NCBI GenBank assembly: GCA_033442325.1
Contig: JAWQFM010000020.1
Location: 222,328-286,327 of the forward strand
Direction of reading: 5' to 3'
Source: Salpingoeca rosetta
Lineage: Eukaryota > Protista > Choanoflagellata
Length of the DNA: 64,000 nt
Shown here: positions 44,501 through 54,147 of the stretch, piece by piece
How positions within the stretch are numbered: the first letter of the stretch is position 1
Layout: each line of letters starts with the position of its first letter
Notes under the pieces: model-generated
What the model saw: only the letters and a program-made list of their open reading frames with translations
What the model was told of the DNA's origin: nothing
Databases searched by the model: none
Translations under genes and position numbers: made by a program

Positions 44501-45286
44501 TGACAGTGGCCATCACCGCACACAGCGATCGATACACAAACGTCTCCAGTGACGAGAACCTGCCACACGTGCCAGTGGAGATGACGGTCAAATCGAGTCA
44601 CAGTCGTCGTGTGGTGCATGAAAGAGAGCAGCGCACGGAACTACACGAATGTGTGTGTGTGTGTGTATGATCTCACTCGAAGATCAGGTTGAGGAGAAGC
44701 TGCTGGAGGTGCCCGAGGACCTCTGGGTTCTGGGACTTGATGGTGGCGGCATTGGCTTGCAGCACGGATATGGCAAAGAAGTGCACCTCCGGTGACCTGG
44801 CAGGCACGAGCGTGCGCGAATCAATGTGGGAGCGGTGTGAGTGCAACGCACGAGTGGTGTGAGTGCAATGCACGAGTAGCGTTAGTGTACACACACACTG
44901 GTTGAGTTGGGGCCAGCTTTGCACCGCGATGGGGGAACCCAACTGCCCGCGCGCCTCCCCTCGCCTGGAAGACCACGTACGTTTGAGGGGCGAGCAGGTA
45001 TGGCACGATGTGCATACTGTCGGGTGCAGATCGCACCTCCTGCAGGTACTCCTCAGCCTGCGATCGTGCAGCGACCACGTTGTGTGTTGCGGTTGTGAGG
45101 CACAGGCAGAGAGTGTGAGCCAAGCAAGCCAGCGAGAGAACGAGGCAGTGCGCGCGCGCGTGTGTGTGTGTGTTGGGGAGTGGGATCCACGCCACTCGCA
45201 TGTCCACGACGAACCTGTGTGCGTAGCTTCAGGTCGTCCGAGTGGTAAAACGCCTGAACGGCACCCACGATGCCATCCAAGTCCAT
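38131..45286 (-). CDS. Importin-beta family karyopherin, importin-13/transportin-SR (TNPO3) group, multi-exon
   Basis: N-terminal GAVQAFYHSDD..ARSQAEEYLQEVRSAPDSMHIVPYLL, SPEVHFFAISVLQ; ELTLKVWYRVLQ; DNWLSVESSLTCI; RVAGALGAWLRNRPD; AGAEAFRDLCEGC; ESPDATAGYFRLV; LMLQEPHVVKQAC; last exon ...LLKSFSAMCR..SN*. Confidence 0.8.
39855..40236. repeat. About 380-bp (GA)/(GACA) purine-rich microsatellite in an intron
   Basis: Continuous gagagagacaga array; pyrimidine-rich on the transcribed (-) strand of the importin gene. Confidence 0.95.
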
Positions 45287-45566
45287 CCTGCTCCACTCCC
45301 ACAGACGCACACTCGACTGCACACACACACACACACAGCACAGCTCACAGCAAGGCAGCAGTCGAAGCAGGCGTTCACTGTCGTCTTGTCTTGTCTTCCC
45401 TTGCTTCTTGCTTGTTGCCGTTATTCGTTCGTTGTTCGTGTGTGAATTTCGTTGTGTGTGTGTGTGTGTGAAGCACAAGAACGAAGACAAGACGCGCTCT
45501 CTGCTCTCCTCTGGCTTTGCTTTGCTGTGCTGTGTTTGCTGTGTGCACTGACGAGGAACAAGCAGC

Positions 45567-45808
45567 ATGGCAAGCGGCAACGGTGGCGGACAGGAGCCGG
45601 CCTGGTATCGTGGGCCCTTCTTGAAGCTGACGGCCACCGCCTCCTTGATATGGACCCTTGGTGTCACTGTCGTCATTGCGGTTGTACGCACAGCTCTGCT
45701 GGCTTCAGGTAGGGTGGATTGGTGGGCATGCACTGTTCCGTGCATTCATACATGTATGTGTGCGTGCGTGTGCGTGTGTGCGTATGTGCGTGTGTGTGTG
45801 TCTATGCA

Positions 45809-45906
<98 letters not shown>

Positions 45907-47136
45907 GGTGGGTGGGTGCGCGCGCGAAGAAAACAGTGTACATGGCACTGACATCAAGTGTGCATATCGTGATGCAGATGCACTACCAGCGTCGTACATC
46001 AGCGTGGCCGCAGCCGTCGTCGGGTCGACAGCGCTCGTGTTCTACCATCGCGCCAACTCACAAGGTGTGTGTGTGTGTCTATGTTTTGCGTGTCTGTATG
46101 TGGCTCTCTTGCTCTTTCTGTTCTATCTCTCTGTCTCTTCTCTGTATCGGTCTCCTATCATCTTCCGTGAACGCTTGTGTTTCACACGCTTGCTTCAACT
46201 GACACACGCTCACACGCTCTTATTCCTCTGGAGCAGCAACACCACCGTCGGCGCGAAGCAGATATCAGCGGTACATTGAGCCACTGTTGCTGCGGTCGAC
46301 TTTGGTGCTCTTTGCACTGCACATGCTGGTGTGTCTCGCATCCACGAGCAACACCAACCTAAGCAAATCGTCTGCGCAGCACACTCCCAATGGCACCGAC
46401 AACGACAGCAGGTGCGTGTGTGTGAATGTGTGTGTGTGTGGGTGTGGGGGGGGGAAGTGAATGTGTGTGTGTGTGTGTTTGAATGCGTGTGTGTGCGTGT
46501 GTATTCACGTGTCAGAGAGTATGAGCGGACCGACTTGTACACGATAGAATGGAGGAGTACCACGTGCCAACAAATACACTCACTCACTCTCATTCACACA
46601 CACACACACACACACACTCACTCACTCTCACGTATTTGCCTCACTCGGGTATCGTTGTCGTTCATGAATCGAGCAGGGCTGTCATCATCACGGTGTATGA
46701 CGAAGCGGTGCTGCGAGTGTTTGTTGCCATCACCACCGCTGCGCTGCTGACCCTGGACCATATCTACAGCAGCAAGGTACGCACTCGCAACACAGCCGCA
46801 CGTGTTGCTTCACAACTGCATATGTCGCAGTCACAGTCACGCATCGCTTGACAGCACACACCAATCATTGACTGTCTCCTCCTCATGTCAACACACATAC
46901 GCATCCACACACACACACACACACTCAATCACATACATACACGCAAACATACATACATGCATACATACACGTTCATAGGCGCTACTGCGGTACCCGGCAC
47001 AGCAAGGGGCACTGATTCTGCGCATCAAGACGAGCGTGCGCGCAGCACTCGAGCGCGCACACGACCTGGCCCTTCACATTGTCTTCCTCACAGCCATCGG
47101 TACGTACGCGCGTGCGTGCGTGCGTGCGTGCGTGTG

Positions 47137-47174
<38 letters not shown>

Positions 47175-47415
47175 CGTGCGTGTGTGTGCGTGTGTGTGTC
47201 TGTGTGTGTGTGTGTGTTGTGTTGTGTTTGTCTGCCTATGTGTTGTTGTTCTGATGATTACATCCCCCTCCCCCTCCTATCATGTCTCACACGCGCCGCT
47301 GCCATGATCACAGGCCACTTTGTTGTTGCTGAGTTGTGTGGAAACGCGTACGAGCAAGTGCTCTCGCTGCTTCTCAACCCCATGCAGCACGACCACACCC
47401 ACATCCACATCGAGG

Positions 47416-47499
<84 letters not shown>

Positions 47500-49039
47500 N
47501 NNNNNNNNNNNNNNNNNNNNNNNNNNNNNNNNNNNNNNNNNNNNNNNNNNNNNNNNNNNNNNNNNNNNNNNNNNNNNNNNNNNNNNNNNNNNNNNNNNNN
47601 NNNNNNNNNNNNNNNNNNNNNNNNNNNNNNNNNNNNNNNNNNNNNNNNNNNNNNNNNNNNNNNNNNNNNNNNNNNNNNNNNNNNNNNNNNNNNNNNNNNN
47701 NNNNNNNNNNNNNNNNNNNNNNNNNNNNNNNNNNNNNNNNNNNNNNNNNNNNNNNNNNNNNNNNNNNNNNNNNNNNNNNNNNNNNNNNNNNNNNNNNNNN
47801 NNNNNNNNNNNNNNNNTGGAGCGGGTCGTGTGGGACTGGTGATCGCGAACCGTGCTTGTGCTTGTTTGATGCCTCTGCATACTCCATCGCAGCAGATGCT
47901 CATGCACACGAACCACCACCTCCTCCTCATCCAACCACATCACACCATCATCACCGACCATGCCTCGCCACTACCACGATTACGCGGTGTCCAGAGTCCA
48001 AGACGGCGCACGTGCGACGGCTGACAATGTCGCTGCTCCTCACATCGCTTCGCCAGCACCAGTCCTTCGCTGCCGTGAGTGCCAACTGCCATCCCCTCAT
48101 ACAATCACACACATACACACACGCACATACTCACGCACATACACACGTGTACACCATGTGCGTGTGCACTCGCACTTTCCTCACTGCTGTCATGCACAAA
48201 TGTGCTTGTGTGTGTGTGTGTGTGCACACGTGTGTGTGTATGTACACGTGACCATATGCCAGGAGTACTTCAAGGTGGATGCGGGCGGGAACAGCCAGTG
48301 GCGCGTGGTGTCGGCGAGTTGCAGCCGCATTCTCCGCCAGTTCATCACCGCCATCAGCCCAGGCGCACTCACAGGCCTCCAGTCAGCAGCAGCCGGGTCA
48401 TTATCGTCATCATCGTCGACAGCAGCAGCAGCAGCGACAAATGGCAGAAAGCCTGGACCGTACGTTGTCTGCTGCAAACACGTGCTGTGTATGTGTTTGT
48501 GTGAATGGGCGTTCGTGTGCGAGTGGAACACGTGTGAAACCGTAACGTGATCACACACTCACACCGATCGTCTCCACTCACATTTCACGCGTATGTGCGT
48601 TTACATGTGTGTTTGTATGTATGTGTACATGTGTGCGTTTACATGTGTGTTTGTATGTATGTGTACATGTGTGTATGTGTATGTGTGTGTATGTGTGTGA
48701 ATGTGTCTGTGTGTGTGCGCAGGCGGGTGATGGGCGGTGGGGATGACGATGTTCCGAGCATTCCATCCACAGGACCAATGACAGCCGTACGTGAATCGTC
48801 TTGAACAAACATACACGCGCACACATTCGCTCTCTCGTCGTGTGCCATGCCTCGCTGATGCGCGTCGCATTGTCCTTCTCCTGCTGAAATATGCTCATCT
48901 CTCAACCGTGTCGTGCTCAACCACCACCACCACCACCACCACCACCACCACCACCATCTGCCTCCCATTACCACTTCACCTTCCTTCGCAGCTCCAGCGC
49001 CGCGTCACCGTCCTCGACCGCCTGCTCCTCTGGGTACGT

Positions 49040-49128
<89 letters not shown>

Positions 49129-50113
49129 CACACACACACACACACACACACCCATGCACACACACACATATGCACACACATATGCATATGCACACACATG
49201 TACACACACACGTGCACACGCACACATGCACACACGCACACGTGGCACCTTATTTCATCCTTGTATCCTCACCACCATCATCATCATCATCGCCACCACC
49301 ATCATTACGACTGTGACCATGACTGCAACAGCTGAAGCGCGTGCACCTGCACCTGCGGCTGGAGCGGGCGTGGTTTCAGCCGTACATCACCCAACAGGAC
49401 GCAGCTTACCTCCTGCAAGGCCAGGTGGGGGCGGCCATTCATGCCACGAGGGCGCACAGATGGCAGTCGTCTCTTGCGGTGGTTCTCTCACCACCAAACA
49501 CACGCGCACATCCATGCACGCCGCACAACCGCACGTCTACATGTACATTGACAAGCTTGCGTGATCTTATCCCATGTTACTTACCGTTTGTCAGCCACAC
49601 CCCACGTCTTGCCTTCCCTTCTCTCACTTACGCCCCCTCCCGAACCCACCATGTGCCGTGTTGCTGCTTCCTCGGCACCAACAGCGGGATGGGATGTTTG
49701 TTGTCCACGCGTCAGACACGCCCGGCCATCTTGCCCTGACGGTCACGCACGATCCTGTTGGTTCACCCAAGCGTCACAGCGGCCACACCTGGACGGGATA
49801 CATTGTCGCCTCAGACAACAGTACGCACCCATTCATTTCCGCTCCGTGTGGGAATGTGAGTGTGTGTGTATTTTCAGAAAATGTGTGCGACATGTATCGA
49901 CTCAGCTGACACGCACTCACCTTGGATTACACACATGCATGCACATGCATAATGTGCAACACATAACACACGTACACATGTCAGAGTATGCGCTGCACGG
50001 GCGGGAAACGGTGCACAACTTCTTCAGCATCGAGGAGATGGTTGCGTACTATAGCAAGCATCCGTACAACACCAACTTTGCAGGCGAAAAGCTCAAGCTG
50101 GCGCCCTACCACG

Positions 50114-50187
<74 letters not shown>

Positions 50188-50955
50188 AACGTGGAAAGGA
50201 GAAGGGGCGGTTTGTGTGTGCGTAGATGGTCTTCTCCATGAATATTCGGCTTGTCAGCATTTGTCACCATGCCAGCCCTCGCCACCACCCTCATCACCAC
50301 GCATCAGGAGCGCGTGGTGCGTGCTGCTGTGCGGGCAATTGTCACGGCCGTCACCACCACGGGCCGCAAGTTCCTCATGCGCGTGCCAGGCATTGCCCAC
50401 CTGCTGCGCACCCCGAGCACAGACGCCCTGCACACCCAGCTCGTCGGCGCTGACGGCGTGTGTGCAGCGCTGGAGATTCTTGCCTGCTCCCTCGAGCATG
50501 CCGCCGCGCTCGACAAGCACACGTGTGTGTCTGTGTATGCATGTGTGCATGTGCGTGTATGCGTGTACCTGTGCGTGTGTACCTGTGCGTGCGTGCGTGT
50601 GCATGTGCGTGCGTGTGTGTGTGCGTGTGTGTGCGTGTGCGTGTGTGGTGCAAACACATCAGCTGTTGTGAACACGTGTTGTGCCTGACACCGCCTTGTT
50701 CGACGCCTTTCATCACAACCACTAACAATCTTTGTCACCATATCCGTTCACCAACATGCAACTTGCTCCCTCCCTGCTCCCACCCCCCCCCACTCCCATC
50801 ACACCGACTCATACACACCAGGCGTGCGCGTGCGTCGGCGGAGCTTGGGGAGTGGGTTGCGCTGTTGTCGCGGCTGTTTCTGACGGTGACGCATCTGGAG
50901 CAGCCGCTGCGCACGGACGACAGATCCACCGTCGACCACGCAAACCACAGACGCG
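45567..50955 (+). CDS. NDC1: NDC1/TMEM48-like transmembrane nucleoporin with an internal SH2 domain; multi-exon, interrupted by a gap, 3' end missing
   Basis: Several N-terminal hydrophobic helices. [19 protein letters not shown] resembles NDC1 [52 protein letters not shown] resembles [55 protein letters not shown] resembles WALEGLSHLVAASFTEDR. SH2 exons are 49332-49424, 49685-49820 and 49985-50115. Reference NDC1 peptides are recalled from memory. Confidence 0.72.
47500..47816. other. Assembly gap (N run)
   Basis: N bases following a (TG)n tract. Confidence 1.
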
Positions 50956-50957
50956 TC

Positions 50958-51060
<103 letters not shown>

Positions 51061-51130
51061 TTGTACGTTCGAGTGTGTAATCATAGAATATTTTTTCAAT
51101 TATTTCCTTGAATTTCACATCACCCACATA

Positions 51131-51284
51131 NNNNNNNNNNNNNNNNNNNNNNNNNNNNNNNNNNNNNNNNNNNNNNNNNNNNNNNNNNNNNNNNNNNNNN
51201 NNNNNNNNNNNNNNNNNNNNNNNNNNNNNNNNNNNNNNNNNNNNNNNNNNNNNNNNNNNNNNNNNNNNNNNNNNNNNNNNNNNN
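51131..51284. other. Assembly gap (N run); may hide the last NDC1 exon(s)
   Basis: N bases. Confidence 1.
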
Positions 51285-51572
51285 AGGTGATATCACCACT
51301 CGGGCCATCCTAGTCAATTTCTGGATGTTGGGTTGGTGTTTGTGGGGCGTGCGTTGGTGTGTGAGAAGCATAAGTACATAACTTGATAGAGTTCTGGTTT
51401 TGTTGTTTATGTTATGTGCTTCATGTCTCGTCTTTGCATGTAGGGTTCTGTCCAGGGTGGAGTTAGGCTGACTGGGGGTGTCAACTTAGCCGACCTTGAG
51501 GTCGCTTCTCAATTTTTCAGTTCCAAGAGCACGACTTTGTTAGTCGTGTGCGCGGCCGATGTCATTCTCACG

Positions 51573-51643
<71 letters not shown>

Positions 51644-52354
51644 CTAGTCCTTGCGCGGCTTGGTGAGCTTGCTGGGAAAGACGGAGAGGGTGAGGAAGCA
51701 CTGCCCGACAAAGTAGAGAAGGTGGATGATCTCGTGCGCGTATGGGACGGGCGTCACGAACTTGCCAATGGCGATGGTGAGGTCCGAGATGGTAAAGAGC
51801 CACGCGCCGATGGTGGCGGCAGTGGTGTTGTGGTGTGAACCGCACGCCGCCGTCACCTGCATGGTGCTGATGGCAACGGTGTAGAGCACCACGGGCACGA
51901 GCAGGTCCTTGTTCGTCTCCAGCATGCTGGGCACGAGGATGGCCAGCGCAGCCACGACGAGCAGGCCGCTTGCCAGCAGAGCAGCGGGTCGCACGCGCAG
52001 CCCCGAAGAGAACATCACTGCGTACAGGATGTGGGCGATGAGGAAAGACGCGAGCCCCGCCGTGAACAAGTGCTCGTACAGCAGCGCTGCATCGCCTAGC
52101 ATGGAGAAGAAGAGCGCTCCCAGCGTCAGCGTCCAGGTGCGGGTCGTGAGCTGGGCTGGCCGCTTGAGGGCCAGCACAATCGCTTGCAAGGCGGCGATGG
52201 TGGTGCACTTGAAGCCCACGCGCACCAGCTGCTCTGTGCCCAGCAAGTTGGGGAAGAACGTGTACAGGAGGCCAGGTACGACAGCCAGCGCCATCTGCCC
52301 TGCAGCTGCGCTCCGCGGCGACCAGCCACTCTGCTTTCCAGCACCACCTGCCAT
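51644..52354 (-). CDS. YhhN/TMEM86 family membrane protein (lysoplasmalogenase-like), intronless
   Basis: 236-aa multi-TM ORF with family motifs GFKC, LFFSMLGDAALL, FTAGLASFLIAHILY, PVVLYTVAISTM, GAWLFTISDLTIA, LYFVGQ. Confidence 0.9.
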   Translation of the reverse strand: MAGGAGKQSGWSPRSAAAGQMALAVVPGLLYTFFPNLLGTEQLVRVGFKCTTIAALQAIVLALKRPAQLTTRTWTLTLGALFFSMLGDAALLYEHLFTAGLASFLIAHILYAVMFSSGLRVRPAALLASGLLVVAALAILVPSMLETNKDLLVPVVLYTVAISTMQVTAACGSHHNTTAATIGAWLFTISDLTIAIGKFVTPVPYAHEIIHLLYFVGQCFLTLSVFPSKLTKPRKD

Positions 52355-52592: not shown

Positions 52593-53417
52593 TCATGCTG
52601 GTGGTGGTGGTGGCAGGGGCTTGTGATAGATATCAAAGCAGACGGGGCCATTGATCAGGGCGGCAATGTGTGGAAGCATGGCGCAGAAGTCGCTGGAGGC
52701 AACGACGCGATATCCCCGCCGGGTGTACCACTTGCGCAGGCGATCCTTGTTGGCGTGGGGTCGGTCGCGGGGGTACAGCAGCTGCAGCTCGCACACGTCG
52801 CAGTTGAGCTCTTGCGCTCGCGCCTCGGCTGCATCGAACAAGCGCTTGCCAATGCCTTTGGAGCGGAGATCACGACGCACCGCAAACATGCCCACCTCAC
52901 CTCGCTTGACCATCTCATGTGCGCTCGGCACGGCCTCCTCGCCACCAGCACTGTCTCTCGCAGCCTCGCTGGTCTGTGCTGCATCTCCTGCCTCTGCTTG
53001 TCGCCCTTGCCCGTGCCGTGCTTGCTTAGCGTCGTGCACCACCAGCTTCATGCAGCCAATGAGGGACGCCTCTGTGACGATGGATGGCCAGTCCAGCGGA
53101 TGCTCTGCACTGTCAAGCTCCACACGCAGCGCCGGTCGTGCTTGCTGCTGCTGCTGCTGTTGTCCTTCTTCTTCCGCTGCTGCTGTCGTTGTTGCAGCCT
53201 GCGCGGTCTTGTCATCAGTGGCCGTGTCCTCCACGACAACCAAGAGCTGTTGTCGCTTCGCAAAGCCCTCCACATCGGCGGGCGAGGTGCGCTGGAAGCC
53301 CTCTCGGAAGATGTCGCCTTCCCCATACATGTACGCCTCGTTGATGATGTCCACAAGCCGCTGCAACACCGCAGGCCGGCCCTCAAACGTGGCTGCCGTC
53401 GCAGCCACCACCCGCAT
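52593..53417 (-). CDS. GNAT family N-acetyltransferase, intronless
   Basis: LVDIINEAY..EG, IGCMKL, motif A GEVGMFAVRRDLRSKGIGKRLFDAAE, motif B LRKWYTRRGY. Start taken at the ATG at 53417. Confidence 0.88.
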   Translation of the reverse strand: MRVVAATAATFEGRPAVLQRLVDIINEAYMYGEGDIFREGFQRTSPADVEGFAKRQQLLVVVEDTATDDKTAQAATTTAAAEEEGQQQQQQQARPALRVELDSAEHPLDWPSIVTEASLIGCMKLVVHDAKQARHGQGRQAEAGDAAQTSEAARDSAGGEEAVPSAHEMVKRGEVGMFAVRRDLRSKGIGKRLFDAAEARAQELNCDVCELQLLYPRDRPHANKDRLRKWYTRRGYRVVASSDFCAMLPHIAALINGPVCFDIYHKPLPPPPPA

Positions 53418-53532
53418 GCTCACGCGCAAAGAGGACGCGGAAGGGACGGGATGAAGAGATGAGTGACAGCAACAACGATGACGACTCCTCACTTTGTAAT
53501 GTAACAAACGCACCACACGACAAGCAGCAAAG

Positions 53533-54147
53533 ATGAGTTTGCGGGAGGTTGTGCAGAGTGTGGTGAATGGCGGCGGTGGTGGTGTCGAGTGGACGGATGT
53601 GGTGTTCTGGGCGAGCTGTGTGGCGGCAGCGCCCATCTGGGGCGCAGCGGTGTTGTTCCCCAAGGCCAAGCAAACCTGTGTCCTGTTCCAGCACTGCATG
53701 CTGGCGGCACTGCCGTTCGCGGTGGCCTTTTCAGTGCTTGTGATGCAGCAGCTGGAGTGGTGGCTGACCCGCTTCATTGCCGCAGACCTGTCACTGGCAT
53801 ACCTCGTGCAGAGCTTCGCCCAGCCGTCCACCTTCCTGCTCCTGTGGCTGTACATCCTTGGCTTTGACATTGCCGTGTTTGGCTGGATGCACCAGCGCCT
53901 CATGCAGCGCCGCGCGCCGGCGCTGGAGATGACCGTCTGGGGCCTCGTCACCGCAGTGTGCGCCCCGCTCGCGCTCGCGTGCTTCACCGCCCTCCACTAC
54001 GCAACACCGCTCGTGGACCAGGCCTCGCCGCCTAATGCTGCTGCTGCCATCAAGAGGGACGAGAAGCAGAAGGAGAAGCAGAAGGAGAAGGAAGGCAATG
54101 ACGCCAAGAAGATCACAAGCGAAAACGCCAGCAAGAAGCGGGACTAA
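53533..54147 (+). CDS. ABA4-like/DUF4281 family membrane protein, intronless
   Basis: About 4 TM helices; SFAQPSTFLLLWLYILGFDIAVFGWM..GLVTAVCAPLALACF resembles the DUF4281 pattern WxHxLAFDLFVGxW..LTxxxGPxGL; Lys-rich tail. Confidence 0.6.
   Translation: MSLREVVQSVVNGGGGGVEWTDVVFWASCVAAAPIWGAAVLFPKAKQTCVLFQHCMLAALPFAVAFSVLVMQQLEWWLTRFIAADLSLAYLVQSFAQPSTFLLLWLYILGFDIAVFGWMHQRLMQRRAPALEMTVWGLVTAVCAPLALACFTALHYATPLVDQASPPNAAAAIKRDEKQKEKQKEKEGNDAKKITSENASKKRD

Follow-up and report, generated by a model that had tools for sequence, protein, structure and literature searches.

A degenerate SH2 domain within a predicted multi-pass membrane protein of Salpingoeca rosetta and its doubtful kinship to NDC1

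Does a nuclear pore membrane anchor of the choanoflagellate Salpingoeca rosetta carry an SH2 domain? This question is raised by the gene PTSG_07707, which lies on contig JAWQFM010000020.1 of the NCBI GenBank assembly GCA_033442325.1. The window analyzed here, a stretch of 64,000 nucleotides, comprises positions 222,328 to 286,327 of the forward strand of this contig, and all coordinates given below are those of the window. For the locus starting at 45567, a first-pass annotation made from the sequence alone proposed the pore membrane protein NDC1 with an SH2 domain spliced into its soluble region. The SH2 half of this proposal was borne out by our analysis, while an identity of the host protein with NDC1 is, at sequence level, not supported by any test we ran. 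Instead, we consider it fairly probable that PTSG_07707 is a lineage-restricted polytopic membrane protein with an atypical SH2 domain, encoded by a cassette, in its helical tail and with a role in docking or as a scaffold.

The SH2 domain and its reading frame

The fused reading frame of PTSG_07707 is already public as a hypothetical SH2 protein. Exact look-up led to the entries EGD76590.1, XP_004991504.1, and UniProt F2UHJ1 of S. rosetta, in which the names "SH2 domain-containing protein" and "hypothetical protein PTSG_07707 [Salpingoeca rosetta]" are used. A literature search for PTSG_07707, its accessions, and NDC1 in combination with choanoflagellates turned up no paper describing the protein. 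Exon 14 alone retrieved the public protein of 615 amino acids (aa) with 100% identity (phmmer, 1.84 billion representative proteins), and this protein could be rebuilt residue for residue from 16 exons located between 45567 and 51466. Direct reading of positions 45000-51600, translated in three frames, revealed a eukaryotic gene of the + strand that is rich in introns and is present as a single copy within its own genome. No long open reading frame (ORF) was found on the opposite strand over the SH2 exons.

When the spliced protein was compared against Pfam, the SH2 family (PF00017) scored 30.7 bits with a cut-off of 21 (E 3.4e-7), and the match spans aa 385-470 and covers profile positions 1-77 of 77. 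The claim that a polytopic membrane protein has a complete SH2 domain spliced in frame into its soluble region thus holds. Single exons delivered only a weak SH2 match (E 0.14), the pieces being too short. Comparison against the PDB by phmmer (177,635 sequences, E<=10) led to the same family, since 39 of 39 matches are SH2 domains, including those of SHP2, CRK, PLCG1, and p85. The SH2 fold is built from alpha-A, a central beta-sheet, and alpha-B. A single-sequence AlphaFold2 (AF2) model of aa 376-486 shows a helix, five strands, and a helix, albeit with low confidence (predicted local distance difference test, pLDDT, 55). If this model is compared to the PDB by Foldseek, the 50 listed matches are without exception SH2 domains or SH2-containing proteins, while the individual scores are weak (E of at least 0.026, template modelling score of about 0.4).

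The phosphate of phosphotyrosine is clamped in SH2 domains by the FLVR arginine at position beta-B5. In PTSG_07707 this residue is replaced by His within the motif FVVHAS, and this His is aligned to the Arg that SHP2 has in FLVRES / FLARPS. Based on the same SHP2 alignment, the domain lacks an Arg at alpha-A2 and a His at beta-D4 as well. With Arg lost at beta-B5 and alpha-A2 and His lost at beta-D4, the structural core seems to be kept, whereas the canonical phosphotyrosine pocket is not. The SH2 domain of PTSG_07707 is real but degenerate. Its binding might be weak, atypical, or independent of phosphotyrosine, and the idea of a phosphotyrosine link is weakened by the absence of the FLVR arginine. 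The domain is encoded by exons 11-13, which form a cassette of 360 nt with phase 0 at both entry and exit. Such a phase 0-0 cassette is the pattern expected for exon shuffling.

Exons, membrane topology and transcription

The annotated features of PTSG_07707 are listed below. Helices were assigned by hydropathy, and exon borders follow the public model.

45567..45708, + strand: exon 1, with the start codon and the first predicted transmembrane helix (hydropathy peak at aa 27-45); exact match to the public protein
45978..46064, + strand: exon 2, second predicted transmembrane helix (public model, hydropathy)
46237..46411, + strand: exon 3, Arg-rich loop, third predicted transmembrane helix, and a further loop, which bears N-x-S/T sequons (public model, hydropathy)
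46674..46776, + strand: exon 4, fourth predicted transmembrane helix (public model)
46979..47099, + strand: exon 5, basic loop, then the first part of the fifth predicted transmembrane helix (public model, hydropathy)
47314..47417, + strand: exon 6, end of the fifth predicted transmembrane helix; its donor continues into a (GT)n tract (public model)
47418..47996, + strand: intron 6 as annotated, containing the assembly gap 47500-47816
47997..48074, + strand: exon 7, basic helical segment with a GAG acceptor (public model)
48263..48459, + strand: exon 8, helical block (the "NDC1-like block" of the first-pass annotation) followed by a Ser/Ala-rich linker; no Pfam family
48723..48786, + strand: exon 9, linker
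48992..49033, + strand: exon 10, short helical linker
49332..49424, + strand: exon 11, a helix, then the start of the SH2 domain (W of beta-A, alpha-A); opens the phase 0-0 cassette
49685..49820, + strand: exon 12, SH2 beta-B to beta-D, with FVVHAS and its His at the FLVR Arg position
49985..50115, + strand: exon 13, SH2 beta-D', alpha-B, and domain end; closes the cassette
50308..50522, + strand: exon 14, C-terminal helical block without detectable relatives
50822..50958, + strand: exon 15, C-terminal helical block
51444..51466, + strand: last annotated exon, seven codons and the stop, across a second run of N (51131-51284)

Within exons 8-15 the acceptors are CAG and the donors GT throughout, all phases match, and the exons join to one open frame of 337 aa. 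The six exons further upstream (45567-47417) add 243 open residues. The one-frame series of GT-AG exons that had been proposed from 48263 onward could be rebuilt with matching phases, and every protein string quoted for it is present. Likewise, its junctions 49033/49332 and 50115/50308 were found to be correct, both in the rebuilt exons and in the public model. The rebuilt set ends with 50822-50954 (the first-pass annotation gave 50955 as its end), while the public exon 15 extends to 50958. The acceptor of exon 4 is a NAGNAG: the public model uses 46674, which results in one extra Ser, and 46677 is equally in frame.

Five hydropathy peaks, ranging from 1.66 to 2.15, were detected in aa 18-221. 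The loops after helices 2 and 4 are rich in Arg/Lys, and the loop after helix 3 bears the sequons. Taken together, loop charges and sequons suggest that the chain leaves helix 5 on the lumenal or outer side, so that a cytosolic SH2 tail requires a sixth transmembrane helix. An exon encoding it may be hidden in the run of N at 47500-47816, and the public protein may be incomplete at this gap, as the topology suggests. The gap lies inside the annotated intron 6, and all evidence for the SH2 domain is found downstream of it. The public model crosses it from a phase-0 donor to the GAG acceptor at 47997. As a candidate, a CAG acceptor at 47994 was considered for exon 7 and rejected: it allows no in-frame join to exon 6, and the sole phase-matching donor of the GT tract gives a TAG stop. 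(GT)n microsatellites directly follow the donors of exons 2, 6, 13, 14, and 15 and offer an alternative GT donor at every second base. Both assembly gaps adjoin such tracts.

To what extent the exons belong to one transcript can be judged from k-mer shares. Over positions 49332-50115, the share of sampled words amounts to 0.35 in seven RNA-like runs from three studies, compared to 1.00 in DNA-like runs, and 270 of 754 words, i.e., 0.358, are predicted if exons only are considered. Over the wider interval 48200-51000, six RNA-like runs hold 0.28-0.29 of the words. The prediction from exons 8-15 is 0.280, and it drops to 0.18 if the SH2 exons are subtracted. Since the RNA-like shares match the exon-only prediction, the SH2 exons are transcribed, with introns removed, in the same runs as the flanking exons. 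The near-exact agreement furthermore leaves little room for untranslated regions from a transcript that starts or ends inside 48200-51000. Thus the k-mer shares favour one mRNA, short of proof.

Least secure in the public model is its last exon (51444-51466). The true 3' end of PTSG_07707 is uncertain, as this exon of seven codons lies past the second gap, and the stop of a convergent neighbour is only about 180 nt away. This neighbour (51644-52354, - strand) is an ORF of 236 aa that consists of a single exon and matches the YhhN family over its full length (PF07947, E 2.6e-35), and its product is predicted to be a TMEM86/lysoplasmalogenase-like membrane protein. Beyond it, at 52593-53987 on the - strand, an ORF of 464 aa was found with a GNAT acetyltransferase domain at its C-terminal end (PF00583, 28.3 bits).

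NDC1 and other explanations

NDC1 resides at the nuclear envelope and pore, where it binds Nup35/53 and ALADIN. Its N-terminal part spans the membrane with six helices, which leaves both termini on the cytoplasmic or pore side, and its C-terminal helical domain faces the pore. If PTSG_07707 were its highly divergent choanoflagellate version, the SH2 cassette would have been shuffled into the variable cytoplasmic loop and would be the first SH2 domain on a nucleoporin. The layout is compatible with this idea, given an N-terminal transmembrane block of five visible helices, for which parity suggests a sixth, and, behind it, about 370 residues that are mostly helical. Three collinear blocks may resemble human NDC1. 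In addition, PTSG_07707 is single copy, and a canonical Ndc1_Nup gene was found nowhere else in the S. rosetta genome. Ndc1 was also undetected in Monosiga brevicollis by a screen with hidden Markov models (Neumann et al., 2010, PMC2951903, Table 2). Without a canonical NDC1 in the S. rosetta genome and with none detected in Monosiga, any choanoflagellate NDC1 must be divergent. However, such a layout is not specific for NDC1, and the Ndc1_Nup profile (PF09531) matched neither the whole protein nor aa 1-330 or aa 480-615 (HMMER, E<=10). A split Ndc1_Nup hit on both sides of an SH2 hit had been expected; the SH2 part appeared, the Ndc1_Nup part did not, and an empty result on the flanks had been named beforehand as the outcome refuting NDC1. 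The label "NDC1-like" for the flanking blocks is an interpretation and not an observation. A match of the insertion point to the variable loop of NDC1 and a link of tyrosine-kinase signalling to the pore, both part of the first-pass proposal, are accordingly conjectural. A six-frame scan of the S. rosetta genome gave no PF09531 match above the cut-off, and none at all in the window. The only sub-threshold matches in the genome (G000:C3:2487388-2488086, G000:C3:2659500-2659877, and G000:C22:41519-41803; E 0.06 to 2) fall into the middle of the profile (positions 350-514), two of them inside very long open frames, and are probably spurious. Among the 39 PDB chains listed by phmmer, all of them SH2, none is named NDC1, NDC1 chains being presumed present in that copy of the database. 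The neighbours of three parts of the protein in the ESM Atlas are either noise or generic HEAT/ARM/TPR clusters with scores of at most 0.88 and few shared features, and none of these neighbours carries Ndc1_Nup. Neither the single-sequence AF2 model of the full-length protein (pLDDT 40.9, predicted template modelling score 0.26) nor the Atlas model (pLDDT 0.47) is usable for a comparison of folds. All in all, we regard a divergent NDC1 as an unlikely identity of PTSG_07707. Another explanation would be an artefact of the gene model, either by merging adjacent transmembrane and SH2 genes of the same strand, or by including an SH2 cassette that is optional and mostly skipped. An in-frame ATG in exon 9 would suit the former, skipping of a phase 0-0 cassette would preserve the frame, and two annotated introns contain assembly gaps. 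Yet exon 11 has no start codon, the eight joins are all canonical and in phase, and the k-mer shares of both intervals (0.28-0.29 vs. 0.280 and 0.35 vs. 0.358) agree with the exon-only prediction, with the SH2 exons found in every such run. We therefore consider an artefact very improbable.

The explanation we favour is a lineage-restricted membrane protein. PTSG_07707 would start with five predicted transmembrane helices, with the sixth in the gap, and would continue with a mostly helical tail that is, according to the deduced topology, probably cytosolic. A three-exon, phase-symmetric cassette would have placed the SH2 domain inside this soluble tail. By function, a membrane-anchored docking or scaffold protein seems most likely, as one of many SH2 architectures specific for choanoflagellates. 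With regard to lineage restriction, three region searches in 5.8 billion clusters (aa 1-340, 478-615, and 352-484) recovered nothing but the protein itself. With exon 14 as query, phmmer retrieved from the 1.84 billion representatives, besides the protein itself, one unrelated repeat protein, and no relatives were found in metagenome contigs of the Joint Genome Institute. From these comparisons, PTSG_07707 so far appears to be lineage-restricted. Several points weigh against our preferred explanation. The lack of relatives is partly due to word-seeded searches and to length windows that exclude short transcript-derived fragments, and the search with aa 1-340 was crowded and considered the best 8000 candidates only. 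Moreover, remote homology to NDC1 is compatible with a missing HMMER signal, and the connection between SH2 exons and transmembrane exons is based on frame logic, the public model, and the k-mer shares.

Significance and comparison with known systems

As it stands, PTSG_07707 represents one more lineage-specific SH2 architecture of choanoflagellates and is of modest interest. Of value are nevertheless the unusual location of an SH2 domain within a multi-pass membrane protein, the degenerate phosphotyrosine pocket, and the hint that the public model may miss an exon. The meaning would change if the identity with NDC1 were true. It would explain why NDC1 of choanoflagellates has escaped detection, and a core protein of the pore would have acquired a domain insertion without precedent. 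In that case, the SH2 domain could tether the assembly of the pore or the nuclear envelope to tyrosine-kinase signalling, or it could serve as a phosphate-independent contact within the pore.

PTSG_07707 resembles NDC1 in gross layout, since an N-terminal multi-pass region precedes a long soluble part that is helical and includes a disordered stretch, and in being single copy. It differs from NDC1 in that neither a profile nor a sequence match was obtained and in that only five transmembrane helices are visible. No NDC1 is known to carry an SH2 domain.

Human RIN2, TYK2, and SH2D5 comprise SH2 domains without the beta-B5 arginine. They share with PTSG_07707 a conserved SH2 core in which the FLVR Arg is replaced, by His in the case of PTSG_07707. 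In contrast to these human proteins, the SH2 domain of PTSG_07707 lacks the alpha-A2 Arg and the beta-D4 His as well and is embedded in a membrane protein.

The choanoflagellate SH2 proteins provide a further comparison. M. brevicollis possesses 123 SH2 proteins, in which SH2 is combined with 53 other domains, and choanoflagellates are rich in lineage-specific SH2 architectures (PMC4342544). Unlike in these proteins, the partner of the SH2 domain in PTSG_07707 is multi-pass and belongs to no Pfam family, the domain resides inside the tail and not at its end, and its pocket is degenerate. In common with them, PTSG_07707 joins SH2 to an unrelated, lineage-restricted scaffold, its phase-symmetric cassette is typical of domain shuffling, and transmembrane segments are among the SH2 partners recorded in the survey of M. 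brevicollis and holozoans (PMC4342544).

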